Source: Phallusia mammillata (lineage: Eukaryota). From it: DNA of 64,000 bases. The stretch spans positions 3,348,001 to 3,412,000 of the forward strand of contig OZ281496.1 of the NCBI GenBank assembly GCA_965637545.1. The letters are read 5' to 3'. This document shows positions 17,732-53,220 of this stretch, piece by piece. The first letter of the stretch is position 1, and each line of letters opens with the position of its first letter. A program made the translations under genes and the position numbers. The notes beneath the pieces were generated by a model, which ran no database searches, was not told the origin of the DNA, and worked only from the letters and a program-made list of their open reading frames with translations.

Positions 17732-20700
17732 ATGTCAATTCAGCTGATAAACTTTGCTCTTTTAGTCTGCTCTATGAGTTTATTACATCGAGGTGAGTAC
17801 GTTTTGGCAAAAGCAATGCAATATAGTCATTAGAAACTACCTTCTTTTAATAGCAGCATATAAAACTTACAAACTTAGACCTAAATGACATTTTACTTTA
17901 ACTTATCAAATGAAACCTAAATTGTGTAAGTTTAAATATTGCATTTGCACGAAGAGTCGTCATCAAAAACGAGATTAAAAAACAAACTATAAGTTTTAAT
18001 GATTTTCGAACGATTTAAATTAAACAAATACTTTGGCAAAACCTGTTTATTCGGGTCTTAAAGACTCGGTGCAAAATGTTGTACAAATAAACTGGTAAAA
18101 AATATTCATTAGGCCTACAATAGCGACGCAAAGTTGCGCTGTCATAAACCGCCACGAAGCGGATGGCACATTTGTGGATAAATAGAAAACGCGCAGCAGC
18201 TATGCCGAACTCCCTATGTAGCAGTTTATTGGTGTCATGGTTTTATATGAGTTCGCGCTTGTTTTTTTCTAATTATGAATGTAATGTTCAGTTTCAGGTA
18301 TACAGTGTCGTAGGCCTGATGTAAACTGGAATGTTTTTTCTGCAACCATTCAAGACACATGCACATCGTGGACTCGACGTTTTACTCACAATCAGCGTTC
18401 AAATATATTCGTTGCTTATTTTCGTGCAGGAGAGCTTGCTACAGACAACTTTTGTAGGGTATGAGATTTGTATCGATGTTTCACTTTTAACCTCTAGGAC
18501 GAGAAACACATGATTGAGTTATGTTCACAATGAGCTTTCGAACTGTCTGCACCTCATTGCTATTTTCTGGTACTGTTTTTCGTTTTTCGCCCTCAGGGAA
18601 TAAATTACTTCAGAAACACGAAAAACTGTAATGTAAAGTAATATTAAAAACATTTTTCTAAACATTACTTTTTTAATTAGGAAGTCAAATCACCATTAAA
18701 ACAGTTTAAAAACATAAGTATGCATCGAAACACTATTACACCTATGCGAAAATAACAAGTCATTATAATTTGACTTTCGATAATATCTTCTGTTTACAAT
18801 CTTACACTTGTATTTGTAATTCAGTGCGAATACTCTTTTTAAACTTGATTTACAACAAGTAAAAAGTCATTTCAACCAGCATTGTTACTGGGCCGGGTTT
18901 GGGCTGATGTCTGATGTTGCAATCGGACATATTTGTGTCGTAATTTCAGAGTGGTAAAAAAATCTGGTGGGTATGCTCAAGTTCGGAATACGTTACAGAC
19001 ATGTATCTTCGGGATTAGTGAGAATTCGGGGGCAATTATAACTGTGATTAAAATTAAACCAATTCCACTGAAATGTACGTTAACTTGATTCTTTTTTATT
19101 AAGATTTATGAGGGAACGGATGATCAAGGTAAATTGGTTGGTACGTTGTTAGGTGGAGATTTCTCTTGCCCGATTGTCGTTAACATCTCGTCTGTCAGCG
19201 TGGTTTGTGTCACTAACCTTACAGCTGTATCTGTGATTATTGAAATACTGCCTGGTAAGTCGGATTTAATAAGTTTCTCAGGAAAGTTTAACTGAGTCTG
19301 TTTTGAAACTTTGCGAATCCCAGTTTCGATTTGAACACATTAAGATCAGTCAACTGCTTATGAACTGAAGTCACCACTTGCACTGTCACCAGCTTAACTA
19401 TTTTGTGTATTTTAGTTGTACAGTGCGGGGAAGATGTTACCGGCCCAGTTTATAACTTAAAATCTCCCAACTTTCCGAGTAACTACTCAACTTTCTCTGA
19501 TTGTGTTTGGAGATTTCACTTCAAAAGCAACACGTCTTTGGTGTTTCAATTCTCCAGTTTTGTCACGCAGGGTGGATTTGACTTTCTATACGTAAGTCAT
19601 TGTGTGTGTTTTGTTAAATCCCAAATCAGAACCCCAAAATAGACTGAATCCAAATTTTTTTAACAAGCCTGTCAAGCAAGGTCTACATAAGACTTTCAAG
19701 TAATGCGACATACATGACACTTTCTGGTTTCAGTTCAAGGACGCTGAAGGAGATGGGAACAGATTGTCTGGGTCATATGATGGGGGATTCAATCACACAG
19801 TTACTACAACAAATCTTACTGTCATCTTTATCAGTGACGGAAGCATTGCAGCGCAGGGATTTAATGCCACAGTCAACATTGGAGCAGGTGAATAGAACTC
19901 GATTTTTAACAGGAAGAAAACGTTAGTTAGCGCAGTAATTTGCTATGTCAATCAACTAAGAACTATATCAATCATTTTGCTATGTCAATCATTAAGAACC
20001 GGTAGTATGTTTATAAAAATCAACTCCTGAAGGTTTTAGCTTTTACCACTACTTCACGTAATGTGCTGAAGCATAACTGTATCCTTCAAATGTAGAAAAC
20101 GCCTGTAATTTGTTTCGCAAGTTGTTGTTTAAAAATAACCTAATAATTTTATTTTTTTGGGAATAGAACAATCAATGAGTGTTTGTAGTACCAAAGATTT
20201 AACCATCACGTAAGTTTTTGTTTGTTTTTCTTGTTTGTTGTAACATTACATAGATTTAATCAAATAGTGATTTTGGCATGGTTGTTGAAATTCCTGCAGA
20301 AAGATGTCATTTATAAACAAAATGTCTTCGTATGTCTTCGATTGAAATGTCACAGTTTATAACAGTGTGTAGTCCAAACGCAGTCATCGTCCACCAATTC
20401 CGTTTCCCACTGTGTTGAGCTCCATAACATTTACCGCTTGCACAGCTGTTTCCGGCATGGTGATTGGAATGGTGCAATTGTGTTGCTATATATGTTCTTT
20501 CCCCATGCAAATAAAACTAGCCAACAACCAAAATGGGCTATACTAAAAATATATTGTTAATGTAATGGACAGTTTATTTGACGATGGTATATTAGAAAAG
20601 TTATCAAGCCAATATTCGCAGAGTAACAGCTGAAGAGCAAAACACATTAGATTACGAACTCGGCGACACGCTTTACATCGCTTTGGACAGGGAAACTCCC

Positions 20701-23700
20701 CTTTCTGAACTCAATGACAGCTGCAAGTTCACGGGGTCAGACCCGGTGTTCGTGTTTGACATTGGCCAATGTGAAGCTTTCTACAAGGTAAAACGATCCT
20801 GATTTTTTTGCCATTTTAGATTTCATCATCGAGCCACTGTTAGCAAACACGTCATTTAGCATTTAGACGTTCGTTAAAACCATACAGACCTGGATCATCT
20901 ATACAGATATGTTCGACACATACTTATTTCGAGAATAGTAGTTACAATAAGTTTGTTTTTATTGCGGTTAAATTTTTGCTACCCTTTCAAAATGTTTTTT
21001 TTTTGTATGAACAGAATGAGAACGGAATGTTGTCGGTTTCCTTTCTGATTTGGAGATTCCTAGCTCCGTCCCCAGCAGTGATCCAACGCGACGTTCAAAA
21101 CAAACTTAATGTCACTTGTCTGTTCGACTCGGAACTACTTATCTCGTCATCAAACGTCCAGCCACAATCAGGGTAGGAAGACATCTACGGCACATGTCAC
21201 ATGCCACATGCCAACAAAGCACGCAGTATGCAAACTATAAACATGACATGTCATTGCATAAGTAAGCACATGCCAAACATGGAACATAGACTGAATATTT
21301 CACCAAATATTTCTGAGAAATTTTTATTTTATTATTAGTGCGAGTCAAACAACTCGGAAAGTAAACGGTTAAGTTAAAAACAATAAATGACAGCTATTAG
21401 TTTTCCATATTCCAAGAATTTCCCATAAACGTGTCAATTAATGTCGTAAACGTTAAAGTTTGTAACAGATCCATTGGAATTTCTGCTGAGAGTACAGGAA
21501 ACTTTGACGTCGCTCTAAATCTCTTTACGAACGAAAACTTTAACGAAAGCTTGCCCGGGGAAGTCACTGTGCCCAACTACATCTTTGCTGAAGTTAAACT
21601 TGATGAAATTTCTGCAAGCAACGATGACTTCATTGTCCAGGTAAAAAGTAAAACAAACTTATTGAAGCAAAATGGATAACAAACTCCCATGATACACCTA
21701 GTGTTTTTAAGTTAAACAGAAAGGTGTTGCTTAAGTCATTGTTTCGCTGTGTGTAACATAGTTGAGAGCTGGCCCGCAACTCATACCACAACCCTACCCG
21801 AACCCTAAAGCATAAGCGATAAGGCACAGACCCTACTCGTTTTTTATAGCTTGTATATGGCCGAAAGTCTGATTGACAGGCCTTTCCATGAAAGCCCACA
21901 AAAAGTACATAATATGTGAAATAATACAAATGGCTAAAACAAAAACGTTTCAGGGTTATTGGGCATTATATTTGAGTGTCAGAATCTTTTAAAACTGGAA
22001 GTTACCCAAAATGTAAAGTCAGGCCGAATTAAATTAATAAATTAAACTAATTTAAAACAAACCTTATTTCTTGATTCAATATTTTGACACATTTGTGCAC
22101 AGCTTGAAGAATGTTGGGCAACACGCGTCGAAAATTCCAGTGGTTTGCCAAGTTATCTGATTGTACAAAGCGGGTAAGCTGAGCAGGGGATGGATTTGCT
22201 GTTTTGTGATATTGTTGTGCTAAAATTGAACGACAGTAAGTGTTTCACAAAGCGTAAGATTGTCTTAAAATTGTTAGATGCATTGCGCCACCCAGTGGAA
22301 GCGAGTCCGCCGACGCAAAGGCGTTGATACGAAATTACAAATCCAATTTTGCAACTTTCAAACTGATGAGCTTTGTGTGGACAAACTTTACCGACGCAGG
22401 ACAATTTATCTACATCCACTGCGACGTGACCGTCTGTCATAATTCAACTGGACAATGCCCTGGACATGTGAGTTGAGTTCGGCAAAGTCTCACAGTCTTG
22501 ATGGACTAAAAACAAATATTTATTCTGTACTCAAATACATGGGCGTCGAGTTTAACAAGAATGCAAGGTAGCGGACGTAAATTGTAACGCCACTTCATGT
22601 GACGGCACTAAAGCGTGCAATCACACGAGCTCCAACTCAAAGCCAAATCAATAGAATGTAATGTTCGTCAAATTCTTATAAAAGTTTTTTTTTTTTTTAA
22701 CAATATTCATTTGAAACACTTTGCTTTAACGTTATTATTGGTTTAGCAACGTTTAGAAAATTTCGTCAACTTGTTGCTCTTGTATCACCTAAAATAACCA
22801 TTTGTACAGTACAATCGCATTGTACACAATAATGGCTATACATTCATTGCCAACAACTGTGTGTTTGACGTCAAAAACAAAGCACTAACCAAATCAGGTT
22901 GCAGTTTCGACTCGTTTTGGTGCTTTTTCGCCAGCGCGTTTGTTTTAAAGCAAAATTGTTCCCAAATTTTATCAGATTTGACGATGTTTCGTACGATACC
23001 GCTACAAGCAAATCAAATATCTGCGGTGGCCGCCTAGAGGCTTTACAAACCCAAGGTGACGGCACCATCCCGCCACCGCCCACTTGACGCCTATGCTCAA
23101 ATATGTTAAGATTTAAAACACAACATGTGACCTAAAATCTTTGAATTATTAATAAGAATCACGCTGTAACATATGAATGTCAACTTACTTGCAGATGTGT
23201 GGAGGTGTAGGACGACGATCTGTTGACAACAATGGACGCAACCAACGACTTTCTGCAGGACCAGTTCACATTTTACAAACTACCAAGTATTTGCTTGTGC
23301 AAGGTAACAAAAGCATAATAAAATGCTTTCATCCTGTCATGCTATTATTTTGAAATCAACAAGCGTAAGTTAGCTTGAATAAATGAATAAAATCAAATCC
23401 CACCAGAAAGTAGATTTTTTCTTGGCAATTATTTCTTCTCATTTGCTTAACCCTTGTATCATGAATACCTCTTAGCTTACCCTAAATCAGTATGACGTTC
23501 CTTGGTCTGGCGTACTGTGTTGTGTAGGTAGTCACATTTTTGGTGAAAAGCATATTGGAAGGCTGGTGCATGTAATAAGTATCCTTCCTTAAGTATGTTC
23601 ATATCTGTGTTAACATTTTCTTGCAGACACAACTAAAGAAAAAGATGAAGAAAATGAAGCAGCTTACAACATCTTCCAACTTGTGATGTTTGTTCTTCTG

Positions 23701-23790
23701 GTGGCTGTAGTGATGGGAGCTGGTTACATTGTGTGGGGCAACATTGCCCGAGATCCAAAGGCGAAATTAAAAAAAATCGTCTGTAGATAA
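17732..23790 (+). CDS. CUB-CUB-ZP-TM protein A (CUZD1-like architecture, 591 aa predicted)
   Basis: 13 GT-AG exons: 17732-17792, 18298-18458, 19104-19254, 19416-19591, 19734-19887, 20167-20209, 20622-20787, 21015-21172, 21469-21640, 22103-22173, 22278-22467, 23195-23303, 23627-23790. Signal peptide; CUB motifs LKSPNFPSNY..CVW and FISDGS..GF; ZP-C motif YIHCDVTVC; EHP-like LSAGPVHI; TM helix; open frame throughout. Confidence 0.9.
22538..23095. mobile_element. hAT-type MITE
   Basis: TIRs CATGGGCGTC...GACGCCTATG; 8-bp TSD CTCAAATA (22530-22537, 23096-23103). Confidence 0.85.
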
Positions 23791-28369: not shown

Positions 28370-28580
28370 AAGCGACGCAAACTGTATTGATCCGGTATGA
28401 ATCACCTGCATTGTGGTACGGGGTTTGCGATGGTTTGCGCCGATAATATCTAAGTAGGCCGCAGTGTGTTCTGATGTATATGAGGAAACCTGAAGCATAC
28501 GAAGCATTTGTGCTGAGAGGTAGCATTAAACGATTTAGACTAAGTTTTTGGCACACTTGATTCAACAAGCTTTGTTAGAT
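28370..28580 (+). promoter_or_regulatory. Conserved upstream block of CUB-ZP gene B
   Basis: Core CTGTATTGATCCGGTATGAATCACCTGC at 28382-28409, shared with A and C. Confidence 0.55.
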
Positions 28581-28687
28581 ATTTGCAACATGATAAGATT
28601 CTTGGGGCTGTGAAATCATGTATTGGTGATATACTGTCTTTTAACAGCTACAATCTGTGGTATCACAGTTCTTTAATTTGCATAAAA

Positions 28688-31600
28688 ATGCTAAAAATGT
28701 TACGAGGGCTATTAAAACTTGCTCTGTTTGTCTGTTCGATTAGTTTTTTGCATAAAGGTAAGTAGATTTGGTAAATGGTAAATTTTGAATTTGATAAAGT
28801 TTCTCTTCCAACTGGCATACTTCATACAAAATACTTGTTTTTGATTGATTGTCTGTGTTGTGCAATATCATTTTATGCACCCTACCAGCGTACTTAAGTG
28901 GTATACATGATCAGTCAAATTCTGGCAGTACGATAAAATTAAGCTTTGCTGTGCGGTTTTCTGGAGGACCACGAGTAAAAGCTTAGTAGAAACCATCAAA
29001 ACAGTAGTCGGGAACCGCCGGTACGCGGTCGGGTACGAGTCCGCGACGAGTTCGTTATCAGGCTGTATCATCTTTCAGGTTAAATGGTCTAAAATAATTC
29101 GCCATGTATCCCGGCGAATATAAACTAATTTAGGTTTTTTCAGTGCCAAATATTTGCAGTTTTTTTAAGACCGGTCCGCGATAAAACTTTAGTTTCAAAA
29201 ACGGCCAGCAGTAGAAAAAAGGTTGCCGACACCTGCTCCAAAAGACATTAATGTTGTGTTGCAAATATCACGGATGTTATATAAAGGGAGCTACGGGTCC
29301 CGAGGGTTACTTAAAGGGGTAATCAATCTATAAAAGGCTGGGAATCACTGTTCTAGTATTGAGAAATCAGAGAGAGTAACACGAAGACAAAAATTCAGGC
29401 CCCACTTTGATTAGATATAGTTTAGTATTTTTTGTAACATATTTCCTACTTTAGTATTAATGCGACATCTTTAGGCGAGCTTCTTTCTTGGCGAATACAT
29501 TTATATCAAAGGAAATATTGGTTGTGGCCAGGAGAAATCCTGCAAAGCATCGTTTTCAACTTGATATAGATTTTCGTTTTTTTAGTAGCTTCCTGTCATG
29601 ATAAACAGAGTGTCAATATCCATCTTTGCACCTCTTTTATTTTTCATGTTTTTATTTGTGCACCAAATATGTTGCATCCCATTAACCCTTTATGTCACAT
29701 AACAATACCTTGTCATACGACACAATGAGAGATTTTGCGTTATCTTTGCGGACATTGAAAGATACATATTTTCATAAATTAAAAGCTTCGGAATATGCTG
29801 GCTTAACCAACCAAATTGGGCGAAAGACGCCGTCATGCCAAACGTGGTACAGGATGTAATTGAGCATAAGCTTGTTATACTGTTTTACTTTTTTTAGTTT
29901 CGGACGCAGAGTGTGCAGTGCAAAATGTCAGCAGGACCTCATTTGCTTCAACAATTTCCCCAAACTATAACTCCTGGGTCCGACGATTTGTTTCAACTGG
30001 AGATTCCTCTCGGTTCATTGCCTATTTCGGTTCGGGACAGCTTGCTGCAAACAACTTTTGTAAGGTAAAAGTTTACAAACATTGTCCTTGAAATGAGCTT
30101 AATTCAAAATTCATCTCTTAGTTATCCGGTAATTTCGAATTTCATTTCTTAAAATTATGATTTAAGTGCCTGTTCCTAACCTCATGCGTAAATCGTAAAC
30201 AAAAAATTTAGATTTACGAGGGATCTGACGACCAAGGTAAATTGGTTGGAACGTTGGAAGGTGGAGGCTTATCTTTTCCAGTTATCGTTGAAAGCTCGTC
30301 TGCCTACATATCTTGTGTCACAAACCTCACATCGGAATCTGTGTGGTTTTATCTACAACCATGTAAGTCAGACTGACGATTCAATTTACAACCGAAACTT
30401 TAGGCATGTAGATAAAACATGTTTTCGGGTCGGTATCAAGAACAAATAAAATGACGTCAAATCTATTCTTTTGCTGACGGAAATGTTTGTATATTAATAA
30501 TTAATTGGTAAACGGATAATTATTAAACACAGTTTCAATGTACAATAAAATCGTAGTTTGTGAGCACTTTTAATCGACAACTAGATATAAGTCACAGAAA
30601 ATTGACAACACGATATTCAAAATAACTGCTTGGAACTATTCTTACTAGTTGCACTGTCTCAAGCTAATCTTTTTGTGTTTTATAGTTACTTCGTGCGGGG
30701 AAGATGTTGCTGATATACCGTACAATTTACTCTCTCCGATGTTTCCTAGTTACTACCCCAGCTATGCTGGTTGTGTTTGGAGATTTCAAATGGATAGCAG
30801 CAGAACCTTGGTGTTCCAATTCTCCACATTTTCCACTGAGAACTGCTGCGACTTTTTATACGTAAGTGTCTTAGAGCAGGGGTGTCACACTCGTGGGGCT
30901 TCGAGGGCCATATTGCAGTTGGAAATTATGCTAAGGGCCGCATGTGATTTTTAATCTAGTTTTATAAACTTCAACCAGGGGAGCACAGCCTTTTCTCCAC
31001 GACGGCCGCATTGCAGATCCTTATTTCACCTTGTTTTAAAATTACAGATGTAAAGAAATAGATTTATATCATACGTATACCATCTATTGATGCCCCAAAA
31101 GCTCAGACTAATTTTCAACTTGATGCGCAGATTGAGCTGCACAGTGTGAAGATCAGTCTTAACTGTTTATGACGTCATAATCTATATTGTGATGACAGTG
31201 GTACATGTTTTTCTCATACACAATACGCACACAAAAGTCTGACACATGTGGCTATTTAGGATGGTAATATTCTTTTCAGTACCACAAAATTTGTTTAGTG
31301 CAGTTTGAAAGTCAAAATATTTGGCAAATGTGTTTTATTTACGTCACGGCGCGCAGAACATGTAATGTATTTTAATAAACATGTTCATGGCTGCACAAAC
31401 TCGTCTCTATGGCCACATGTGTCCGTACGGCCGCAAGTTGTGCAACCCTGACTGAAACTAAACGCTTTTTATAGTTAGAGGAACGGTTTACTATCGTTTC
31501 TATTCACAACATGTGAATTTTTATTTCTTTATTAAAGTTCTAGCTGTAAATGACTGTTTAATGAATAGCTTCAACTTTGAATAGTTACAAAAATTATTAT

Positions 31601-34600
31601 ATTTTGATAAAAATCTGACGGTACTACAATTTTTCTGACTAAGTACTGCAATTGTTGATTGTTTGAGGGCCGCATGCGGCCCGCGGGCCGCACGTTTGAC
31701 ACCCCTGTCTTAGAGCATATTATAAACTAATTTAGAGGTTCCAGGAGAGGGAATCCCGACATGAGAAAATTTTGCTTGTAAAATGAGGGTAGTGTAAAGA
31801 AACTATTTTTTTCTCTCTTTTTTAAAAATGGTAATGTTGTCGACGCAAATAATCGAGTGGAAACGGTTTGTTATTTTTAGGAGATTTCCTGCCGTACGCA
31901 CTGAAATTCATATATGTATAAGTTTTTTTTTTTTAAATGATTTTTGAGTAACATATTTATTATAAACTGCTTTTCCAGTTTGCTTCTAATATTGAGAAAA
32001 GCAATCAATATGCTTAAGGTGGCAGAAATCTTATTTTTGTCAAGCGCCTAATTTTATGATGAGAAACTTGCTGGCTTAAGGAGGTATGCGGCCTTTTAGG
32101 ACATCAAGTGTGGCCTTCGGGAATAAATGTTAACATTTGTATTGTTTTTAGTTCAAGAACGAAGCAGGTAAAGTGGACAAATTTTCGGGGGAGCTTGAGT
32201 CATTTGATTACACGGTGACAGCAACTAATCTCACTGTCTTGTTTTTGAGCGACTCTAGTGGACCGAGTACTGGATTTAGTGCGACAGTAGGTGAGACAAC
32301 TCTCCTTCTAGTTACAAACTGTCAACATGCAAATGATTAAAATACACTTGAACTCAGCCAGCATGCGTTATAGGTTGAGGGTGATCTGAAAATAAATTTT
32401 CAATATATATTTTAAAAACTTGAATTAACAAATTTAATTTGATGTGCAGAAGTAAATTTTAATCCACAAAACGCAGAATAGTGCTCGAACTTCTATATTT
32501 CGTTCACAAATTGTTTTTTTATATATATACAGTAGAAACACAATCATCAGTTGAATGTAGGACTGAAAACTTGATCATCAGGTAGGTTACTATTTTCTTT
32601 TTAATTATTTTGTGAAATTTATTGATAATTGTTGAAAGTAATATTCAGAAGATTGTTGAAAAAAATTGTAGTACTTCAAGCATTTTGTTGTGCTGCCTGT
32701 TTTGTCATAAGCCTGCAATTGCTTGTTTTTTATTGATTGAGACATCTTTTACTTATCAGCAATGGGTCTTCTAATGCAGTGGTCTTCAACCATTTTTATA
32801 GGCGACCCCAATTTAAGGGAAAATGAAATCAGAATTTGCATGCGACCCCATTTTTATCAACACCGAGAAAAATGTTTTAAGTAATGCTGAACCGAAAGAA
32901 CAAGTAGGCTACACTAACTGTACATAATTACAAACAAATTTGGCGATACAAAAGTATTCCGAAAAAGTGGCTATACAAAAGTGTTATAAAAAATTTTTTA
33001 AGGCGTTTCATTTAATACATAAACCCAATTTTCGGAACACAAACTTGCCAAATTGTTCAACATTTAGTTTGCACTGTTAGTGAGATGGTTGCGCCTGTAT
33101 ACTGCCCACAAGTTTTTGAAGCCGCGGCTTGACTTTGCACAAGCTTAACAGCATGTCATGCATTCCAATCAATTACGATGTTTCGTTTCTAATACACTCG
33201 TTGCACTAAATCCTGCTTAACACAGCAACGTGGTTGAAAACGGGATTAGAAAAATTTGACATAGTTGGGTACGTTACATAAATAACTATTCACTGGTTCT
33301 GGTGTCACCTTAAATAATACAAACTTGAAGTGTCATAATACACGTTGTCCAAACCCATTGTTACGCGATAAAGGCATTTCGTGTTTTTTCACTACCACGA
33401 TTTAATTGCAACATGAGGTAGCAAGCTGTACCACAATTCAAGAGCAAAAGTTGCGATCTAAAGGAACATAATATTAGTTTTATTTTCTGTGATCAATTTT
33501 GAAATGCAATAAATCAAGCGACTTATTGCGACCCCAGAAAAGTTTAGGCGACCCCACTTGCGGTCGCGACCCATAGGTTGACGACCACTGTTCTAATGGG
33601 ATGCCGCTATAAAAACTGCAACATAGTATAGATGTTTGGAAAATGAAAAAAATAACTGGTTGTCTAGACGGGTGACACTAAAACGCTGAATGGGCGGGAC
33701 GGGCGGGATGGGCGGGACGAGTGGGCAACCGCTAAATATCGGGTAAATTGCTGACGGTTAGAGCTATTAGGGTTGGGTTGAGGTTTTATAATAGTATATG
33801 AATCAAAAAAATGTCCCTGCCTAAAACTTATTCAGCAATTTCCTGACATTCGGCAAAAATGCTATGGCGGGAGATTGCTTGACGTCTCAGGCGCAGGATG
33901 TTTAACTCGGTTGCGGAATGTATCCGGCGGAATTATTTTTAACGATTTTCTATTACAAAACCTTATCCCAACCTTAATAGCTCTAACCGTCAGCAATTTA
34001 ACCCGATATTCAGCAGTTTTCACGACGTCCCGCCCGTCCCGCCCATTCAGCGTTTTAGTGTCACCCGTCTAGACTTATAAAATGTACATAAAGTTAACAA
34101 TCTAATATTCGCAGAGTACCAGCTTATCAACAAAACAGATTAGATTACGAACTCGACGACACTCTTTACATCGCATTGGACAGGGAAACCTCCCTTTCTC
34201 AACTCAATGACAGCTGCAAGGTCACGGGGTCAAACCCAGTGTTTACGTTTGACATTGGCCAATGCAAAGGTGTTTTTAAGGTAAAATTGGATTTTGTTCT
34301 GAACTCATAGACTATATGTCCTTATTATTTTTTAAGACAACATTATCTGTTAGGGGTAATAATAAAGTGTAATAAGCTTTTATTGCTGCATAATAAAAAG
34401 CTGACAATTTTGAAATATGTAATTTTCGTGCTCTGATACAGAATGCAAACGGTACGGTGTCGGTGTCTTTCCTGATCTGGAGATACCTAGCTTCATCCCC
34501 TGCAGTGATCCAGCGTGACGTTCAAAACAAGCTCAATGTGACTTGTTTATTTGACGCGGACCTTCTTATCTCGTCATCCAAAATTAGTACACAAATCGGG

Positions 34601-37443
34601 TAAGGAAAAGAAAAACAAACCATTATATAACAGCTATGGAGTGGCATTCGGCACAAGACAACATGTACAAGACACACAGTAGGCGTCATAAAACGTAACA
34701 CGTGGTCTTTTGTTGACCACACTTGGAAATAAATTGACAAAAGTAAAACAGGATGTTGCACATGACAAAAACATCTAACCACTCCACGAATGGCATACGG
34801 CTTTGAACACATTACACACGACACAGAACACATAAATCTACCCTTGGCACAATACACCTGGCCCCCACGACATGAAATACGGTAAAACTATATCACATCT
34901 GCAACATGTCACAAAGCATGCACCCAACAGCACCTGCCACACTATGTATGACACGGATCACAGTTTGTCTGTCCTTCCTTTTTTCGGTAATTTCGGTTGT
35001 TATGTGCACTTTGCCATATTAGGTGGCAAAATCGTTACGGGGTGGCTTAGTACTTCTCAGATAATGCCAAAATGTTGTGGAGAGTGTGTTTGTATTGCTT
35101 TTTTTGTAGATACAATTTCTGATACAATCAAAGCACAACATGATGATACAAAAAAGGACAGAATTGATTCTGTACGTTTCTAAAGACATAGTTATAATGA
35201 AGTTTGTTATTTTGCTTTTAAACACCCCGCGAGCACCTAAGGGAGTTAAAAACAGTGAGCTGTTTGTTAAACTTTTATATGTTTTAGATTTGACGAAATT
35301 TTTGCAAAGAAAGCAGGAACGTTGGATGTCGCCCTAAATCTATTTAGCAACGAATACTTCAACGAGAGCTTGCCCAGAGAAGTAACTGTACCCAACTACA
35401 TTTTTGCTAAACTTAAACTTGATGAGATCTCTGCAGCCGATGATTACTTTATTGTCCAGGTGAATTGAAAATAAACTGCTTTTAGTGCAGGAAAACATTG
35501 CATTCTTTGATTTAATATACATTATTCTGGCATCTTTGGTCTAGTTTCCAATTTATACTTTAAAGTGGAATACCTTTTTGCACAGCTGGAAGGCTGTTGG
35601 GCGACACGCAATGAAAACTCCGATAGTTTGCCGAGTTACCAAATTGTACAAAGCGGGTAAGATATACTTGAATTACCTCAACACATGTTTTTCTTAGTAG
35701 CGAGTTTATTTGTTTAGTATTTAATTTTGTATCTGTATTTCACTATGATTAACCCAGCATCGAAACTATTAGATGCGTTGCGCCACCCAGTGGAGGAGAG
35801 GCTGCCGACGCGAAGACGTTGATACGAAATTACGAATCCAACTTTGCAACGTTCAAGCTGATGAGCTTTGTGTGGACAAACTTTACCGACGCAGAACAAT
35901 TTATCTACATCCACTGCGACGTGACCGTCTGTCATAATTCAACTGGACAATGCCCTGGACAGGTGACTTGATTAGAGTAGATTTTGGACTTGCAACAGAG
36001 AATAAAGTTTAGCAAAATAGTGTTGGTCGAAAAAAAAGGTCAAGGAAAATGATATGTTTTTTTTTAGATCAAAATTCCTGGGTATTGCTCTAAAACAATC
36101 GAGACAGTATGTCTCTAAATAAATAAGAATTTCTTTGGCGTTTATGTCCAGTTGTAGCATTAAAAATATTAGGGTGGAATGGCTTTATATTCTGTTGCTT
36201 CCATACCAAAGTTTTCTAGGTTCGCTTGCCAATACGGTATATTTCCTGTCACCAGCTGATTTTATGTGGCTAGTTAGCAAAAAGGCTGAATGGTCCGGCG
36301 CGCCTGAATCATAACATAACCTTGATAGGAATTCGACCCCCATCCACCTATATTTTATTTTAATCCGAACCACAATAAAAATACGAGGTTTACTGTGTGT
36401 AGCTTACATACAAATTGAAAAGTAATTTTAACCCTCTAATTTGGTTTTGTGCGAGCAACGGTAAATATTCCGCCACAGGCTACGCTGTCCTATGTTGAAA
36501 TCGCTAGGGAGACTGGCCCTTAATCGGCCTGGAGAACTATGATGTAAATATATGTGTGCCGTGATGGGCTTAATTCTGTATGACGCCTTCAATAAAACTG
36601 ATGTACAATGAAATATCAATATTTGTATAATTCTTTTTGCAGTCTTGTTCTGGTAAGAAACGGCGATCTGTTGAAAACAATGGTCGCAATCAACGGCTTT
36701 CTGCAGGACCAGTGCACATCATTCAAGGTACCGCTTTCCTACTTGGTAAGACAATGATAAAAATTTAATTTCTATTCTAGATAATATTGCTGATACACGT
36801 GCTTTTGCTAAACAAATTTGTAGTTCTAGCAAGCAAGTCGCACCTCTTGGGGCATAATAACACAGGTTTTCGAAATATTTTCTCGGTTTAATATACTGTG
36901 TCTTGGTGATTGATTAGTTTGATGTATATGTGATTAACTTGACTGGTAACATTACCAACCGCAGCTTTTATTCGATTTCCATAAGTTGTTTTAAAAATAA
37001 GACTGTAACTAGCATTAAAGGACACATATAAAAGGCAAATAAAATAAATAATTGTCACAAAATATATTTCATGAGTTCGAATCCCATCACTTGTTTTCTT
37101 TTTCTTGTATCCGTTGCTTTAACAACCAAACTGATTCGGTGGCCTTTTTGCAATCTCAAAGTGTACCGTGATTGTAGCCAACACATGAGTATAGCCAACA
37201 CATGTCCGTTTCGTGACTGGCTAATCAATCAGTACAGTTCTTCCCATATTTTTTTGCTATATTTGTTAATCATGACTTTTTGTCTCTTATACAACAGGAG
37301 AAAGAAATGAAGCTATGGAAGGAGCCGGCAACAGCTACCAACTTGTGATGTTTGTTCTGCTGGCTGTGATTGTTATTGGAGCTGGTTACATCGTATGGGG
37401 CAAACTGACCCGGGATCGCAATGCGAGACAAAATCGCCAGTAG
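28688..37443 (+). CDS. CUB-CUB-ZP-TM protein B (585 aa predicted)
   Basis: 13 exons: 28688-28757, 29898-30064, 30212-30362, 30686-30861, 32152-32290, 32533-32581, 34115-34280, 34442-34599, 35288-35459, 35586-35656, 35773-35962, 36643-36745, 37298-37443. Same phases as A; basic site KKRR before LSAGPVHI; TM helix. Confidence 0.9.
29002..29235. mobile_element. Short hAT-type MITE (degenerate)
   Basis: Ends CAGTAGTCGGGAACC...GGTTGCCGACACCTG; flanks CATCAAAA / CTCCAAAA are only an imperfect TSD. Confidence 0.55.
30877..31707. mobile_element. hAT (Charlie-like) non-autonomous element
   Basis: TIRs CAGGGGTGTCA...TGACACCCCTG; TSD TCTTAGAG (30869-30876, 31708-31715). Confidence 0.92.
32777..33590. 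mobile_element. hAT (Charlie-like) non-autonomous element
   Basis: TIRs CAGTGGTCTTCAACC...GGTTGACGACCACTG; TSD TTCTAATG (32769-32776, 33591-33598). Confidence 0.92.
33662..34074. mobile_element. Foldback-type MITE with long TIRs
   Basis: GTCTAGACGGGTGACACTAAAACGCTGAATGGGCGGGACGGGCGGGA mirrored at 34027-34074; inverted similarity continues for roughly 140 bp. Confidence 0.85.
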
Positions 37444-44266: not shown

Positions 44267-47200
44267 TTATATTCTACTGTAGATCTTGGGCATTTTTGCC
44301 CATACGAGGGAACCGGCTCCGATAATTATAGCAGCCAGAAGAACAAACATCACAAGTTGGAAGATGTTGTAAGCGGCATCATTTACTTCATCTCTGTCTC
44401 CTGGAGTGTCTGCGATAAAAAGAATGTTTAACTTAGATAAACATATATGTGTGCGAAAGCATTTGATACTGGAACTAGAGATTAACACCTCAGACAGACT
44501 AAAAATAATGCCACTCTTGTATACACTTGGAAGTGGGCCAAGCTTGCGAGAGATTGAAAGCCAATACGAGAAGTAACTTTAAACTTTGATTCCTGGTTAA
44601 GGCAATGTCGAGTATGTTTCTTACACACAAAACAAAACGAAAAAGTGACTTTAGGAGTCAAGCTATGCATAAGTTTGCCAAGATGGTCGAGTTGTAAGTA
44701 AAACCACTTGTGTTCAATAGTTTGTGGGTTCTAATACTGTCTCGGCAGCCTGTGTTTCCCTGGGCAAGAAACTTGATTTGCATTGCTCCAACCCAGTGAA
44801 AATCCACGTATTGCACTACATTAACGTCCCCTCCGCTATAACGTAGTTGCTATAAATCTAGCAGCTCGACCGTGGACTGACTGTTAGTTAACGCATTCAG
44901 GCGTTGCAGGCTCATCGAGGATTAAAATAAATAGAAACATGCGAATTATTTGATAATTGAGGCCTAATATAGCTGAAGTAAACATGTCCCCAAAGGTTTT
45001 AGTTGATAAATACAACAATTTGAGTAGTTGGAACATAAGCAACTAAAGTATTTGGTCCAGAACTAAGTTAATATGTAGGAAAGAAGAGTTTAATTATTGT
45101 CTTGGTACCTTGCACAAGCAAATACTTGGTAGTTTTCACGATACGAACTGGCCCCGCAGAAAGTCGTTGGCTGCGTCCATTGTTGTCAACAGATCGTCTT
45201 TTTTTCCCACCACACATCTTCAAATCAGTTTCATATTAATATTTTTTTTCATGTATATATATATATATACTATTAAGGATAAACAAAGCAGCTAAATGGA
45301 ATCAGAAAAAACTTAGGCATGTAATGGTTTTTCCCTGTTTATTTCAACTAAAGCAAACTTATTGGAGAATAAATTAATCGAATATAATCCACTTTACTTG
45401 CAATGATGCAAGCAGCTCGACGGCGGACTTATTATTAGAATACACACCACACAAACTCAATTCACCTGTCCAGGGCATTCTCCAGTCGAGTTTTGACAGA
45501 CGGTCACGTCGCAGTGGATGTAGATGAACTGTTCTGCATCAGTAAAGTTTGTCCACACAAAGCTCTTCAGCTTGAAAGTTGCAGAGTTGGATTCGTAATT
45601 TCGTATCAACATTTTTGCGCCGGCAACCTCACTTCCACTGGGTGGCGCAACACATCTAATAATATTTACAAAAATTTACGCAAGGTCAAATGCAATGTGC
45701 CGTTCAATATATTATGAGAAAGATCACACGTTGCAAATCAAACACAAGTAATGATGTAAAGCTTACCCGCTTACTACAACAGGGTAGTTCGGCAAACCAC
45801 TGGAGTTTTCAACGCGTGTCGCCCAACATTCTTCAAGCTGTATACAAAATGGTAAATAAATCAAATGTAGAAGCTCTATAGCACCCAAATGATGCTTACT
45901 GTAATGCAACAAGTGTAATGTGCATTTTTTATGAAACACGAACTAACATTTAGCAACCTCTGTTACCTTAATGCTTTTGTTTTTACCTGGACAATAAAGT
46001 CATCGTTGCTTGCAGAAATTTCATCAAGTTTCACTTCAGCAAAAATGTAGTTAGGCACAGTGACTTCTCCGGGAAAGCTTTCGTTGAAGTATTGGTTGGA
46101 AAAGAGATTTAAAGCAACGTCAAAGTTTCCTGTATTCTCAGCAGAAGTTTCAATGGATCTGTAACAAACTTCTACGTTTGAGAAATAAATGGACACGTTC
46201 CTGAGGAATTAGTCACATCAATAGACGTCATTTACTGTTTTTGACTTCACCGTTTATTTTCCGAGTTGTTTGACTAGCACTAATAACAGAATACAAATTA
46301 ATCAACAGACCGTTGGAGTCTCTGTGCCATGTTTGGCATGTGCTTACACATGCAATGACATGTGTCATGATTATAGTTTGCATTCTACGTGCTTTGCAGC
46401 ATGTTACATCTGCTATTGCATTACATGACAAGTATTATGTATATGTTTTGCATATTGTGCGCTTTGTTGGCATGTGACATGTTTGGCATGTGCCGTAGAT
46501 GTCTTCTTACCCGGCTTGTGATTGGACGTTGGATGACGAGAGAAGTAGTTCCGAGTCAAACAGACAAGTGACATTGAGCCTGTTTTGAACGTCGCGTTGG
46601 ATCACTGCTGGGGACGGAGCTAGGAATCTCCAGATAAGGAAGAACACCGACACCTTTCCGTTCTCATTCTGTTAATAAATAAATAAAAAATATTTTTAGA
46701 AGGGTAGCAAGAAAGTTGACAGCAATAAAAAGCACCAAAACTTAATCGTAACTACTGTGGACGAAATGAATATGTGTCGATACATGGTGATGCCTGCCTG
46801 TATTTTTACTAAATGACATGTTGGGTGGAAGTGGCTCGATGAAGAAAACAGAAATGAGTTTTACCTGATAGAGGCCTTCGCATTGTCCAATGTCAAACAC
46901 GAACACCGGGTCTGACCCCGTGACCTTGCAGTTGTCATTAAGTTGAGAAAGGGGAGTTTGCCTGTCCAGTGCGATGTAAAGTGTGTCACCGTGTTCGTAA
47001 TCTAATGTGTTCTGTTCATCAGCTGTTACTCTGCGAATGATGGCTTTATTAGTTTACATGGACAACTATACAATACTGGAAACACGCCATCGCCAAATAA
47101 AATGACTATTTATCAGTATTTAGTCAGCTGCGCAACGTTAAAACGTTGTGGAGTGCAAGACAGTGAGGATTCCACTGCTGGACAATTACTGAGCGCGCAG

Positions 47201-50200
47201 TAGCTTGTAATAAATGTTTCCTGCTTAAGGCGAGAGTTCTATTAAGTGACTTTATTGTTCAGGATTTCAAAAATAAACAAAAACATGCCTAAAAGCAAAG
47301 ACAAACTTACGCGATGGTCAAGTCTTTGGTCCTGCACACACTCATTGATTGTTCCATTCCTACAAAGAACTATTAGTTTGCATGTAAGATGTGGTTCTTA
47401 ACCAATTTATTTTCGTTACCCATTAGAAGAAACCGGGGAGTTTTAACAACGTAAAAAAATTACGGCTTGTCGAAAATTGTTAAATGGCCACATACTGGTA
47501 AATCCATAAGTTTTAATTCCTGAAAAAGACTCGGAGTTTATTTTATGAACATATAAACTGTTAGAAACTGTCCCTCCTACAAATTACTGCTCAAACTAAG
47601 ATTTTTCCTGTTGTTGAAATTTGAGTTCTACCTGATTCAATGTTGACTGTCGCATTAAATCCCTGTGCTTGACCGCTTACGTCGCTGACAAAGATTAATG
47701 TAAGAATTGTTGCAGTAACTGTATGATTCAACCCCCCAATATAATTTCCAGTCAATCTTTCCACATTACCTTCTTCATTCTGGAACTGAAAATAAAATCA
47801 CCGACCAATGTATAAACCAGTGAACAAGTGTGATGTATGTTGTTGTTATAAAAGCTCAAATGTATTTTTTGGTTTGGGTTCAGTTTTTGTTTCGCATCTA
47901 AATTCATGCTCAGTCAAATTAATTTCATCGTTTTATATTGGCAGATCTAACTTTAAACAAAAATTCTGTCTTGTTTAAAAATCGGGTGATGCCTGGTTTT
48001 TGGTTCTTTAGTGGGATTTAACGAAAATGACAAAACGACAATCACTTACGTAAAGAAAGTCGAATCCATCCTCGATGTTATAAGTGGAGAATTGAAACAT
48101 CAAGGACGAGCTGCTTTGCAATTGAAATCTCCAAACACACCCAGCACAAGCGGAGTAGTCACCCGGAAACATAGGAGATAACAAATTATACGGCAGGCTG
48201 TCAACATCTTCACCACACTCTTCAGCTGAATTGCACATAAAGCGTCAATGGTTGATAGTTACGCTGCGGACGGACAGTGCAGATGGTGCACAAAACTTTG
48301 GTTTCTAAACAATTGCCAAATTACTTATGCTTTCAAATCTACTCTGTGTTATGTAAGCTGGGGTGCCGTGTGGCCAATCTCTTGTCACCAGCTGCACTGA
48401 AGAGACGACAAAGGTTAAAACAGAATTAACAAGCTGGATCTAAATACACAAAATACATTTTGCAGACTCCCCAAATGGTGGGTGGTCAAGTACATGATCT
48501 CATATTTTAGATTAACACATAGTTAAGCTTTTCCGTAAACATCCGACTTACCGGGATCTATAAACACTTTTATTTCGACTGTTGTCAGGTTGAGGACACA
48601 TGATACATAGACAGACGAGCTTTCAACGATAACCGGAAAAGATAAGCCTCCACCTAACAACGTACCAGCCAATGTGCCCGAATTGTCGATTCCCTCGTAT
48701 ATCTAGATTAAACCTAGATTGTATCTTAGTCAAAAAACATTTACAATTTTAGCAAAAAACATTTAACGCTCTTTTGGTTTGATGTGCTACTTCAATGTAG
48801 GTTTTTTCTAGCCTTTTTTGTCCACTTAGATCTTACCTAATGGCACAATAGTAGGTCAGAGGCAATCACATACATACATTAGCAAACATAGGATATCACA
48901 AGTTACTTGTGTGGGTTCCAAAATCAACCAAATTAATGCCCATGTTCCAAGTTATCCAATGCAAAAGTGCGTAAATAAGCATAAAGTGAAGATGTTAAAC
49001 ATTTGAAAGATTAAAATCACAAATTTAGTAATAGATCAAAACCATCAACAACATGGCTTAAACTGACGATCACTGTTTGCCTTTTTAACTAGAGTACAGT
49101 AAAACCAATGGACGATAAAATCCTTGGTTTAGCATTACACCAGTTGAACGACAAATTTGGTAAAATGCAACCTGGTGGACGAAACACTTGTTCGGTATTT
49201 TCTGAGGATCTTAATGCAACTTACAAACAAAACCATTACCGACCCAAGTCATAATATACGAAATTCTACCTGACAAAAGTTGTTTGTAGCAAGCTCTCCT
49301 GAAGGAAAATAAGCAACCAATCTAGGGAAGTCGTCTCGGGAAACAAAACTAATAGTCCACGTGTCACATATAGCTGGAATATATTCAGTCAGTCGTGAAG
49401 AGATTGCTAGCCCAACATCACACCGTGCATCTGAAACTTAACATTGCATTTGCCAATAAGACAAAATTGAACCAATCCAAAAAATATATATTAAGGTTAA
49501 ACGAAATATGCCCTTTTCGTATTTTTATGGTTAAACGAATATGCCCCTTTTCGTACGTTTCGTATTTGTTTACAAATATTTCAACAGTTTTGATACAATT
49601 AAACATTTCTACGTTTAAGAACAGATATTGATTAGTTTTTCTTTTCAATTTTGTTTCCTGGTACGGCAGAGCACTGAAATTTCTAAGATTGAAACAGTAT
49701 GGGTGCATTGTGCTGTTGTCAAACGAGGATTGTCTTCTCAATTTCGGGATTTTAGTTAAGAAACGGATTAAATATAGGTAATATTTATTGGGAATGGAAC
49801 GTTCAATACTAAAAGAAAAAGGAACAGTGATTGTTTGAGTATTTATCTGAAGTGAATCGAAACACGCCGCATAAGACGAGAGTGAAATAAAGAGAAAAGA
49901 ACCGTTTGAGGGTGAAGGTTCGTGATGTTCTGGGCGAAAAAAATCACCAGGAACGGTGATGGCACAACCGTAAACAAGTTCGGCCGATGAAGCCAGCAGG
50001 TATTTTTTTGGAGCTGTGCGAATACCAAACTCAACTTAACCTATGGTGGTCCCCTTGCCGACACCAAATCTTCTATGGTTTCGTTTATGCCCATGAATCT
50101 GTCCCTCCGTGTCACTCTCAAGATTGTTCTGAGGCATTTCATTTTAAACTCCAGCAGAGCTGTTAACTCCTGTTCTCTGAGAGTTCAAGACTCAGAACCG

Positions 50201-53200
50201 CATATGGCTATACGAAGGATTAAAGCCTTATATAACCTAAGTTTTAGGGTTCTGGTCATGTCACTGGAGGTCCAGATAGTGCTCCTTAGACCACCACATG
50301 CCTGTGACGCCATGGATATTCTCTGGAGGACGTCAGAGGCACAGTTCGGGATCAAACATCCGAGGAACTTGAACAATTTAACTTTTGCGAACTTGACGTT
50401 GCACTTGCAAGCCGTGCCAAACAAAATTTGAAGAGACAAGTTTTCGTGTTCACCGTATGGATGGGTGCAATGAAACGTGTATGAAATCAAAAACTTTAAG
50501 TTGCCATGATGTTGGGACAATTGGACGAGGCGACTCAAAAGGAAACGTCACAAATGATGGTAGCTCTAGATCAGGGGTTCTTAACCAGGGGTGCACGCAC
50601 CCCCAAGGGGTGCAAGAACTTTTCCTAGGGGGTGGCGGGAATGCTGAATCATTAAGGTTGGTTAGGTCTTTTTTTATAAACACAAAACCCAGGTGGGTGC
50701 TAAAATTGGTTGGTGATTTGAAAGGGGTGCAGTAAGGAAAAAAGGTTTAAGAACCACTGCTCTAGATTGATCGATCTACATGTCATTTAGTTGAGGGTTA
50801 GTGACTGAAGTACGGTGTGCTTGAACCTCTGAGGCGACCTGAGCAGCTGCCAGTGACAAATAATCAAAATCGAAAAGGAATCAAACTGCATCGATGAAAA
50901 CGCGGGAGAGGGCGTCGGCCACGTGTTTTTGTTTGCCTTCGCACATCTGTGGTAAACTCAGAAATGGCGGTTAAATGACGTTGTTGGTGTGCTGACCACG
51001 GAGCCCACACTTCGGTTAATGCAAAGGTCAACGGCTTGTGATGTGTGTAAGGTCAACCAAAGAACCAACTCTAACTGGTCATCCAAAGAACGCTGTAGGA
51101 TTACCCATAGGTCTCGTATAAATAGGAGACCTGATGCGTGCAGCGCCAGAAATAAAACGATGGTACAAGTTTACGATACCTGCAAATTACTGAAGCCCGT
51201 TAGCAGCAGAGGGGTGCGGAAAAGTTTGAAAAGCTTCGACTTTGTTGGGAAGGGGTCGGGCACGGGTATTGTCAACTCGATGTCCCGTCAAAGTACCTCC
51301 CTGGAAGGTCCTTATGTTTTATGTAATAAGGTCCAAATACCTCCCTGGAGGTCCTCGGTTTGCGACGGCGTTTACAAGTCCAAATGCCTCCCTTGAAGGT
51401 ATAAGTTGCGCCAGCGTAACTACCGCGGAGCAACGGAGAGGAGCAACGGCGCGGCCCGGAGCAACTGAGCAACTCAAACGTTGCAAAGGGAAAAAAGGCG
51501 TTGAATTCTATGCAACAGAAACCAGGGTATTGCTTTGAGCTGTATCATACGCTTCAAAGTTACAAACGGTGACTTTTATGTGCAATATCATTGTTTACTT
51601 TTGTTGACTGAACAATAAACTTCATGTTTTTTGTTTGGTGTATGGTAATTGATTTTAGAATTGATTGGTTTGGTAAAAACTAAGGCTGTCTTAGCATCGG
51701 CTACATAGAAAAAAGCCATATTTGAAATGTCTATAAAAAAATAAATCATTTGAACTTAGGAATAAAACCTTTTAGATCGTGTTTTGTATGTATTAGGGTA
51801 TTTGGAAAAGCATTTGGACCTCTGTGAGATTTTTTTTGGAAAAAGCTTGGACCTCAAAGGGTCAATGGTCGCAGTACTCCGAAAGTGGCTTGCTCGCGAC
51901 GAGCTCCCACCATGACTTAAACCGAATGACATGCTAAGGAATCCAAAAAGGCCGAAAGGAGTAATGACCGCGGTTTTCGCAATATCACCTGGGCCACAGG
52001 TACCTGGTGGTAACCACTAAAAGTCTTGAATGTGAGGAATTGGCAGAACGATCAGGCCGGGTAGCTGCGTTAAGACCGGGTAGATGCGTTAAGATCGGGT
52101 AGCTGTGTAAATCATTGCGGTCGCAAAGCCCATGGACTGGAAGAACGTCTAATAATACCTCGTTGCAGCTCGTTTTATATTCTTTTTTAGCAAAGCCGAG
52201 TTTCCCGGGAGGGCGAAATCGAGCGCGAAAGTGCACGAGTAGGCCATTAGCTGGGAAAAATGCTGAAGTCCATGCTTGGTTTACGACTGTGAAAAATGGG
52301 AAAAAGTAATTCCTTGCAATTTGACCGACAACCGAGCATGAGCTGAAGTGCTCGCGGAAACGGCGTTAAGGTTTGGTTCGATGCTTTATCCAGTGCAACG
52401 CTGGAGAAGGTGTCGGCATTGATGAGACGTCGATGCTTGAGGTCCATGCAAAAAAAATGAGCCCCTGGGCAAGCATAAACTGTCATTGAAGTTTGCCGGA
52501 AGGTAAATGCATAGTTAACAAACGTGACCCGTACGTCCGGATATGGGTGCCATTCGCAGCAACGAAGTTTTTTTAGGATTGTTGCGGCGCTTCAATCCTA
52601 TGGCTGTATTGACGCTTATCTCGGAGTAGCGAGATGTTTATTCGAGGTACATGAAAATAGAATAACACAATGTACTAATACGTCGCAAAGGACGAGAGTG
52701 AAACAAAGAAGGCATTCTGTCCGGTTCGCTGTAGGTATACAAGAACATGATAATCATAGTGAGAGAAGCCGCCACATATGTAGACTTTTTCAGCTCACTA
52801 AAACGAGTCCAAATCGTATTTCTATTTGCTTTTTGCATGCGATAAGTGAATCATGATCAAATAAGGCATTCTCTGCATGAACGAAATGCATAAGCTGTTA
52901 GGGTACGTAAAATAAAATTATACCACACAGCCAAAGTAACCATTGAAATCCAACTATAGTTTCCACTGTATGTTGTCATACTGTTTATTTGTTCGCAACT
53001 ATTTTGCTTCATTGCTCTATGTATACCCGTGTGCAGAAAAACGGCAAAACGTTTGCAAAATAATTAGTTCTTTAACCAAAAACGAGTATTTTGTGTAACT
53101 TTATGCCAGTTAAAGGAGAAACGTTACTAAATCAAAAAAAAATTATCAAATCAACTTACCTTTGTGCAAAAAACTAATCGAACAGACAAACAGAGCCAGT

Positions 53201-53220
53201 TTCAATAGCCCTTGTGACAT
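44267..53220 (-). CDS. CUB-CUB-ZP-TM protein C (586 aa predicted)
   Basis: 13 exons: 53160-53220, 49270-49430, 48552-48702, 48050-48225, 47632-47785, 47311-47359, 46865-47030, 46511-46668, 45987-46158, 45767-45837, 45466-45655, 45109-45217, 44267-44409. Same phases as A and B; open frame; KKRR site; TM helix. Confidence 0.9.
44680..44930 (+). mobile_element. Probable tRNA-derived SINE (different family)
   Basis: Degenerate A/B boxes followed by GTGTTTCCCTGGGCAAGAAACTT, resembling the conserved central domain of V-SINE-like elements, and an A-rich end. Confidence 0.45.
49850..50420 (-). mobile_element. RTE-clade-like LINE 3' RT fragment
   Basis: Minus strand FKFLGCLI...RISMASQACGGLRSTIWTSSDMTRTLKLRLYKALILRIAICGSES*...KMKCLRTILRV. 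Confidence 0.75.
50572..50759. mobile_element. hAT (Charlie-like) MITE
   Basis: TIRs CAGGGGTTCTTAACC...GGTTTAAGAACCACTG; TSD CTCTAGAT, which fits the NTCTAGAN target preference. Confidence 0.92.
50885..52650 (-). mobile_element. Decayed Ty3/gypsy pol (CsRN1-like): protease-RT-RNaseH remnants
   Basis: Minus-strand motifs AANGTHIRTYG, GIIRRSSSPW, YHQVPVAPGDIAKTAVITPFGLF, PLPNKVEAF, HKPLTFAL...QQRHLTAISEFTTD...VADALSR. Frameshifted, with an insert at about 51290-51880. Confidence 0.85.

Follow-up and report, generated by a model that had tools for sequence, protein, structure and literature searches.

Vertebrate CUZD1 is a poorly understood protein in which a signal peptide, two CUB units and a ZP module are followed by a membrane span and then a short tail. 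Uromodulin and GP2, which are held on the membrane by a glycosylphosphatidylinositol anchor, have a ten-cysteine ZP module with a cleavage site and an external hydrophobic patch (EHP) strand. DMBT1/gp340 (SRCR-CUB-ZP) is a mucosal pattern-recognition protein, and is a model for microbe binding at epithelial surfaces. Among the ascidians, the vitelline-coat proteins HrVC70/HrVC120 and CiVC57 have a ZP module, a membrane anchor and proteolytic processing. HrVC70 and CiVC57 contain EGF repeats and lack CUB domains, and CiVC57 has a von Willebrand factor domain as well; the variable N-terminal parts of ascidian vitelline-coat ZP proteins have been linked to recognition (PMC9265791, PMC8849226). 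Here we describe three genes, A, B and C, from a 64,000-nucleotide stretch of contig OZ281496.1 of the ascidian Phallusia mammillata (the window), each of which encodes two CUB or CUB-like domains followed by a ZP module. We consider that the three probably represent a tandem expansion of CUZD1-like genes specific to this lineage; all are intact, and the heads of their proteins vary far more than the ZP module that carries them.

Three CUB-ZP genes

An all-against-all comparison of the open frames gave three co-linear sets of about 13 similar pieces each, two on the + strand and one on the − strand. The homologous exons were aligned and common splice sites were chosen, which gave three intact paralogues in the window with 13 exons each: gene A (17732..23790, +, 591 aa, ATG at 17732), gene B (28697..37443, +, 581 aa) and gene C (53220..44267, −, 586 aa, ATG at 53220). 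The limits proposed for the cluster in a preliminary description of this DNA, 17732 and 53220, are indeed the start codons of genes A and C. All three frames are open, and the introns are GT-AG in 36/36 cases across the three genes, with identical phases (1,0,1,0,1,2,0,2,0,2,0,1). Gene C departs from the other two at two places. Exon 6 begins at an acceptor 6 nt further upstream than in gene A, so that two residues are added in frame, and a 1-nt deletion in exon 13 alters only the tail beyond the membrane span. The homologous position of the exon 6 acceptor reads GG in gene C, and the gene was considered as a pseudogene on this account; this was rejected, because the AG 6 nt upstream preserves the frame. 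In all database work exons were searched singly, and joined coding sequences were used only in local computation.

The order of the parts is the same in A, B and C: a signal peptide, a CUB-like domain (CUB1, exons 2-3), a CUB domain (CUB2, exons 4-5), a ZP module (exons 6-11), a cleavage site with an EHP-like strand (exon 12) and a membrane anchor (exon 13). Each gene is thus predicted, from its sequence, to encode a type I membrane glycoprotein. The signal peptide is provided by exon 1, which in all three genes codes for 20 residues with a hydrophobic core, as read by eye from the translation. There are 13 N-glycan sequons in A, nine in B and eight in C.

Two relatives are used repeatedly in what follows. 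P0001, the closest, is a 278-aa Phallusia mammillata fragment that shares 69-73% identity with A, B and C over their C-terminal halves. P0009 (Phallusia, 597 aa) is 30% identical over nearly the whole length.

The ZP module (A 20167..22467, +; B 32536-35962; C 45466-47359) consists of ZP-N and ZP-C and contains ten cysteines, as four plus six, in the order typical of uromodulin and ZP1-2-4. In an alignment, the ZP exons of the window are in register with tunicate ZP modules. The Pfam ZP-C profile matches exon 11 (E 2.2e-6). ZP-N was undetected by Pfam or PDB sequence searches on single exons, and in the PDB sequence search exons 7 and 8 had no matches and exon 11 had marginal matches only. The ZP module of P0009 was modelled from an alignment that included the window exons (predicted local distance difference test, pLDDT, of 82). 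Over 320 columns the model matches human uromodulin in its polymerisation region with E 4.8e-13, and in this comparison both ZP-N and ZP-C of uromodulin are matched.

Exon 12 (A 23195..23303, +; B 36643-36745; C 45109-45217) encodes the dibasic cleavage site, which is GRRS in A and KKRRS in B and C, and the EHP-like strand LSAGPV. When P0001 was aligned to human uromodulin, its KKRRS coincided with the cleavage site (RFRS), its RLSAGPV with the EHP strand (LNLGPI) and its DADVLLS with the linker strand (DMKVSLK). The cleavage and EHP motifs of P0001 are common to A, B and C. Exon 13 (A 23627..23790, +; B 37298-37443; C 44267-44409) encodes, after an acidic spacer, about 22 hydrophobic residues taken as the membrane span, then a short basic tail and the stop codon; the tail has 8-20 mostly basic residues, by eye from the translation. 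The suggestion that variable N-terminal heads are here mounted on a conserved ZP module that looks polymerisable is borne out; the cleavage site and EHP strand align with those of uromodulin, and the motifs are kept in all three genes.

By analogy with uromodulin and GP2, one mechanism seems the most likely. The protein would reach the apical or outer cell surface, where cleavage at the dibasic site would remove the blocking EHP strand. The ZP modules would then assemble into filaments, with the two glycosylated CUB heads directed outwards, and the heads might bind a ligand.

CUB2 (A 19416..19887, +; B 30686-32290; C 47632-48225) is a recognisable CUB domain. Pfam PF00431 matches exon 4 above its gathering score in every copy, with E values of 2.4e-8 in A, 2.7e-7 in B and 7e-7 in C, and exon 5 of gene A gives a weak match to profile positions 66-109 (E 0.051). 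In B and C, CUB2 has three acidic residues (E, the D in DFLYF, and the D in SD), and A has Q for the first of these. These positions may correspond to the ligand-binding triad of calcium-binding CUB domains.

CUB1 is less clear. Exon 2 carries the variable tip and the first half of the domain (A 18298..18458, +; B 29898..30064, +; C 49270..49430, −), and exon 3 carries the second half (A 19104..19254, +; B 30212-30362; C 48552-48702). The three exon 2 peptides quoted in the preliminary description were located at 18297-18383 (+), 29897-29989 (+) and 49345-49431 (−). CUB1 and CUB2 are both two-exon modules, with phase-1 introns at their borders and a phase-0 intron inside. In an alignment of fragments, exon 2 occupies the columns of exon 4, and the pattern C..C-x-W is common to the two. 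The domain had been described as lacking the SPNYP motif, which is correct for A and C but not for B, where an SPNY remnant is retained. The stretch of P0009 equivalent to exon 3 weakly matches the Pfam CUB profile (E 0.11, profile positions 58-96). An AlphaFold model of P0009 residues 22-245 gives full-length matches to the tandem-CUB structures of PCPE-1, neuropilin a1a2, Neto2 and cubilin, with E values from 1.5e-10 to 1.5e-7; the mean pLDDT of this N-terminal model is 57.5, and that of its first domain 60-78. The exon phases, the C..C-x-W pattern, the SPNY remnant, and the profile match and model of P0009 together give indirect support for CUB1 as a degenerate CUB domain. CUB1 of gene A contains five cysteines, that of gene B three and that of gene C four. 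One member of the first CUB1 pair, namely the second cysteine of exon 2, is lost in gene B, and gene A has gained an odd cysteine.

Variable heads and a conserved ZP module

Conservation differs strongly along the protein. Amino acid identity over ZP exons 7-11 is 78% for A-B, 85% for A-C and 75% for B-C. The corresponding values, in the same order, are 51/58/56% for CUB2, 49/44/52% for CUB1 and 39/33/41% for exon 2. The contrast between exon 2 and the ZP exons is significant in every pair (Fisher p 4e-8 for A-B, 1e-13 for A-C and 3e-6 for B-C). The preliminary description had set a hypervariable exon 2 against highly similar ZP exons, and identities of 33-41% and 75-85% confirm this. Given that CUB2 is itself only 51-58% identical, the gradient spans both heads. 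The extreme variation is limited to the first ~35 mature residues, where identity is 17-31%; the remainder of CUB1 is 56-61% identical, and exon 3 by itself 56-64%. The notion of a variable CUB1 is accordingly right as regards the low identity of exon 2, but the strongly variable part is only this tip and not the domain as a whole.

The ratio of nonsynonymous to synonymous substitution rates (dN/dS) was calculated by the Nei-Gojobori method, pairwise among the three paralogues. It is 0.20-0.32 in the ZP exons and 0.31-0.60 in CUB2. The ZP module is under strong purifying selection. In CUB1 the ratio is 0.63 for A-B, 0.90 for A-C and 0.45 for B-C, and in exon 2 alone it is 0.64, 1.53 and 0.42 respectively. 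The second half of CUB1 has values of about 0.5-0.7, and the tip (the first ~35 mature residues) 0.34-1.47. The tip is near saturation at synonymous and nonsynonymous sites (proportion of synonymous differences, pS, 0.48-0.71), and changes at about the synonymous rate. No comparison among A, B and C is significantly above 1, the best being A-C in exon 2, with a bootstrap range of 0.92-2.70, 94% of bootstraps above 1, and Fisher p 0.18. The domain average fits weak constraint as well as it fits adaptive diversification.

These values bear directly on the proposal that the heads are diversified in an adaptive sense. According to this proposal, the CUB tips are recognition surfaces for microbes, gametes or allogeneic partners, shaped by selection and displayed on filaments that co-polymerise via near-identical ZP modules. 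The tip is only 17-31% identical and yet keeps the structural C..C-x-W residues in A and C, and the ratio of 1.53 occurs in the youngest pair, A-C, with most of its bootstraps above 1. The number of sequons also varies between copies (13/9/8), and with 75-85% identity the ZP modules of the different copies could plausibly join the same filament. Against this, the single exon-level value above 1 is not significant, the other two pairs have exon 2 ratios of 0.64 and 0.42, and the whole of CUB1 has ratios of only 0.45-0.90. CUB1 is at or below 1 in 3/3 pairs, an outcome that the preliminary description had itself named as counting against its proposal. The variable part is one third of the domain rather than a discrete loop, and the loss of a cysteine in B and the gain of an odd one in A look like relaxed constraint. 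Lower dS in the ZP exons accounts for part of the contrast. Adaptive diversification of the tips is therefore possible but unlikely, and the term "diversified" is not supported in its adaptive sense.

The synonymous divergence (dS) itself differs along the gene. In pairs with B it is 0.66-1.09 in the CUB exons, about twice the 0.43-0.49 of the ZP exons. Moreover, the closest pair switches from exon to exon: B and C are closest in exon 1 (92% nt identity) and in the promoter, A and C in exons 4-9, 12 and 13, with introns 7-8 alignable, and A and B in exon 11 (93% nt identity). A runs test by permutation gave p 0.011 for A-C, 0.031 for B-C and 0.078 for A-B. The three copies thus have a mosaic history. 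Lower dS in some ZP exons, taken with the switching of the closest pair, implies that gene conversion contributes to the contrast between heads and ZP module, and the conserved ZP scaffold reflects purifying selection together with some exchange between copies.

The N-terminal domain could also be decaying. On this explanation it has no function, the working protein is CUB2 with the ZP module, and at least one copy is heading towards a pseudogene. The tip does evolve at near the neutral rate, the number of CUB1 cysteines is odd in A and B, CUB1 goes undetected by Pfam, and in gene C one acceptor is displaced and the tail is frameshifted. However, the three frames are open over about 585 codons with canonical splice sites at 36/36 introns, and exon 2 has retained its length and phase in every copy. 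The second half of CUB1, with its dN/dS of about 0.5-0.7, has a motif in common with a relative that is only 30% identical. We regard decay as extremely improbable.

Relation to CUZD1 and to other ZP proteins

Only 20 representatives reached E<=0.001 in an exhaustive HMMER scan with exon 11, and all those looked up that have a recorded taxon are tunicate. Exon 11 has Ciona ZP proteins among its closest ZP-C relatives. Three proteins of Clavelina lepadiformis (P0023, P0002 and P0010; 635-645 aa) are 27-33% identical to A, and P0023 is named CUZD1 by NCBI. They share with A, B and C an N-terminal region, here of about 250 residues, and a ZP module; they have a furin-type RRRR site and, unlike A, B and C, an extra EGF-like module between the ZP module and the membrane span. 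Their genes (L001, L002 and L003) are single and dispersed, on different records and with unrelated neighbours within 10 kb. Tandem arrays were considered as a general feature of ascidians, and this was rejected because the three Clavelina relatives are dispersed single genes. A word-index protein search, with either the seven-sequence alignment or P0001 as query, returned the query alone.

A tree of the ZP half places A, B, C and P0001 in one clade with support of 100/100. Within it A and C form a weak pair, and the placement of B and P0001 is unsupported. From this tree, either the split of B from A and C is about as old as the split of P0001, or P0001 is a further paralogue from the same species.

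The likeness to vertebrate CUZD1 is one of domain plan: the parts are the same, in the same order, and the proteins are of similar size. The trio differs from it in that the first CUB domain is degenerate and Pfam-negative, and in that the genes of the window form a tandem trio. In a feature search of the ESM Atlas with P0009, the nearest clusters were two of CUZD1 (0.93 and 0.92) followed by a DMBT1-like cluster (0.90). The preliminary description regarded the locus as a candidate for an undescribed system. This is not supported, in view of the CUZD1 domain plan, the naming of a Clavelina relative as CUZD1, and the placing of a Phallusia relative beside the CUZD1 clusters in the Atlas. As it stands, the trio is an ordinary gene-family expansion of a known protein type. 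The wider reading of the locus as a recognition system survives in part. Variable heads on a ZP module are present, but the novelty and the adaptive diversification are not upheld, and some of the contrast comes from low dS and the mosaic history of the ZP exons.

Several points weigh against describing the trio as lineage-specific CUZD1-like genes with two CUB heads. Exons 2-3 of A, B and C have no Pfam match even at E<=10, so that CUB1 can be called only CUB-like; an hhalign comparison of CUB1 with CUB2 gave the expected register but was not significant (E 0.13); and the fold assigned to CUB1 is taken from a 30%-identical relative and a low-confidence model (pLDDT 57.5), and is best treated as putative. 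In shape, the CUZD1 clusters are no nearer to the isolated ZP module than are those of ZP2, uromodulin-like proteins or ZP3. The CUZD1 label is therefore one of architecture, and orthology to vertebrate CUZD1 is at most putative. As regards selection, dN is above dS in exon 2 of A-C, three sequences so near saturation leave room for positive selection at single sites, and the permutation support for gene conversion is modest. Finally, the tissue and function suggested for A, B and C are drawn from analogy only. With these points taken into account, the CUZD1-like trio is still the reading that we consider probable. The CUB units are phase 1-1 exon modules, and the architecture could have arisen independently by exon shuffling.

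Among proteins of solved structure, uromodulin and GP2 are the best matches by sequence and by fold. By sequence, the ZP module matches uromodulin with E 3e-11, GP2 with 5e-10 and ZP2 with 1.5e-9, which is a slight preference only. The ten-cysteine ZP module, and the cleavage site and EHP strand at equivalent places, are shared. The trio differs in its CUB-CUB head and in having a membrane span as anchor. It also has no EGF or D8C domains, and for this reason A, B and C would at most work like the uromodulin/GP2 family and are not members of it. DMBT1/gp340 resembles the trio in having a CUB domain adjoining the ZP module, and is the third nearest cluster in the Atlas. It differs in its SRCR domains, which are absent from the trio, and the proteins of the trio are much smaller.

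The vitelline-coat proteins HrVC70/HrVC120 and CiVC57 come from the same animal group. It is conceivable that A, B and C belong to the egg vitelline coat, are produced in oocytes or follicle cells and have a role in sperm binding or self-sterility. ZP proteins make up the vitelline coat of ascidians, with eleven detected in the Ciona coat proteome (PMC8849226), and individually variable ZP proteins are reported from Ciona oocytes and follicle cells (PMC8849226); Ciona ZP proteins are, as noted, among the nearest ZP-C relatives of exon 11. However, no EGF-like sequence was found in the translations of A, B and C, whereas the known coat proteins HrVC70 and CiVC57 have EGF repeats, and the ascidian fertilisation reviews examined make no mention of a CUB-ZP protein. 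In addition, the ZP module is slightly closer to uromodulin and GP2 than to ZP2. A place in the egg coat is thus very unlikely. More generally, a CUB-ZP protein is unmentioned in the ascidian fertilisation, haemocyte-allorecognition and gut-barrier papers examined, and the searchable literature held nothing on CUZD1 in Ciona or other tunicates, or on LOC100182005.

A broader proposal can be made on the basis of the CUZD1-like reading, although we think it decidedly unlikely in full. The trio would be part of a large, multi-locus, ascidian-specific expansion of CUZD1-like genes, which would have evolved separately from vertebrate CUZD1, through the shuffling of CUB exon modules of phase 1-1. 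The fast tips would then form a germline-encoded binding repertoire on mixed ZP filaments, acting as a microbe filter at a mucosal or tunic surface or as a marker of self and non-self.

The combination of a conserved, putatively polymerising stalk and drifting heads makes these genes a tractable case for how ZP proteins gain new ligand specificities, and the tandem family is equally tractable for how gene conversion and selection cause some parts of a gene to change fast and others slowly. Should the heads bind microbes or gametes, ascidians would be a simple chordate model for surface defence of the uromodulin/GP2/DMBT1 type, or for egg-coat recognition.

Exon coordinates, upstream elements and neighbourhood

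The exons of gene A (+ strand) are, for exons 1-7, 17732-17792, 18298-18458, 19104-19254, 19416-19591, 19734-19887, 20167-20209 and 20622-20787, and for exons 8-13, 21015-21172, 21469-21640, 22103-22173, 22278-22467, 23195-23303 and 23627-23790. In gene B (+ strand) exons 1-7 are at 28697-28757, 29898-30064, 30212-30362, 30686-30861, 32152-32290, 32536-32581 and 34115-34280, and exons 8-13 at 34442-34599, 35288-35459, 35586-35656, 35773-35962, 36643-36745 and 37298-37443. Gene C lies on the − strand, with exons 1-7 at 53160-53220, 49270-49430, 48552-48702, 48050-48225, 47632-47785, 47311-47359 and 46865-47030, followed by exons 8-13 at 46511-46668, 45987-46158, 45767-45837, 45466-45655, 45109-45217 and 44267-44409.

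Intron 1 is longer in gene C (49431-53159, 3.7 kb) than in A (0.5 kb) or B (1.1 kb). At 50-52 kb it includes a stretch rich in G+C (44.5%), whose open frames of 118-135 aa are without Pfam matches, and this stretch may be an inserted element.

Most intron sequence cannot be aligned between the copies. By contrast, each ATG is preceded, at a distance of about 300-400 nt, by a block of 250-300 nt that is conserved at 67-78% identity. The block includes a 28-nt element, found at 17341..17368 (+) in gene A, 391 nt before the ATG and inside a conserved promoter block of ~250 nt (17254-17536); at 28382..28409 (+) in gene B, 315 nt before the ATG; and at 53523..53550 (−) in gene C, 303 nt before the ATG. 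The window contains exactly three matches to this element, and 100 shuffles gave none. The conserved promoter block suggests that A, B and C may be regulated alike.

Upstream of gene A, at 11547-15272 (+), is a gene with very long exons that encodes a rhodopsin-type seven-helix receptor preceded by at least 11 LDL-receptor class A repeats (Pfam LDLa, E 2.4e-46; 7tm_1, E 2e-9 and 1e-5). A related LDLa fragment is present on the opposite strand at 7068-7652 (−). At the other end of the cluster, just upstream of the promoter of gene C, broken frames of a Ty3/gypsy-like long terminal repeat retroelement are found at 54607-56938 (+), comprising gag-like, zinc knuckle, aspartic protease and reverse transcriptase-RNase H sequences. 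No tRNA or Rfam matches were found in the window. There is a perfect microsatellite at 1672-1877, with (CGCAGTCA) repeated 25.8 times at 100% matches. Two copies of a repeat about 1 kb long, at 1-965 and 5351-6442, are roughly 70-90% alike in translated frames, and the second copy ends beside an assembly gap (N run 6474-6657).

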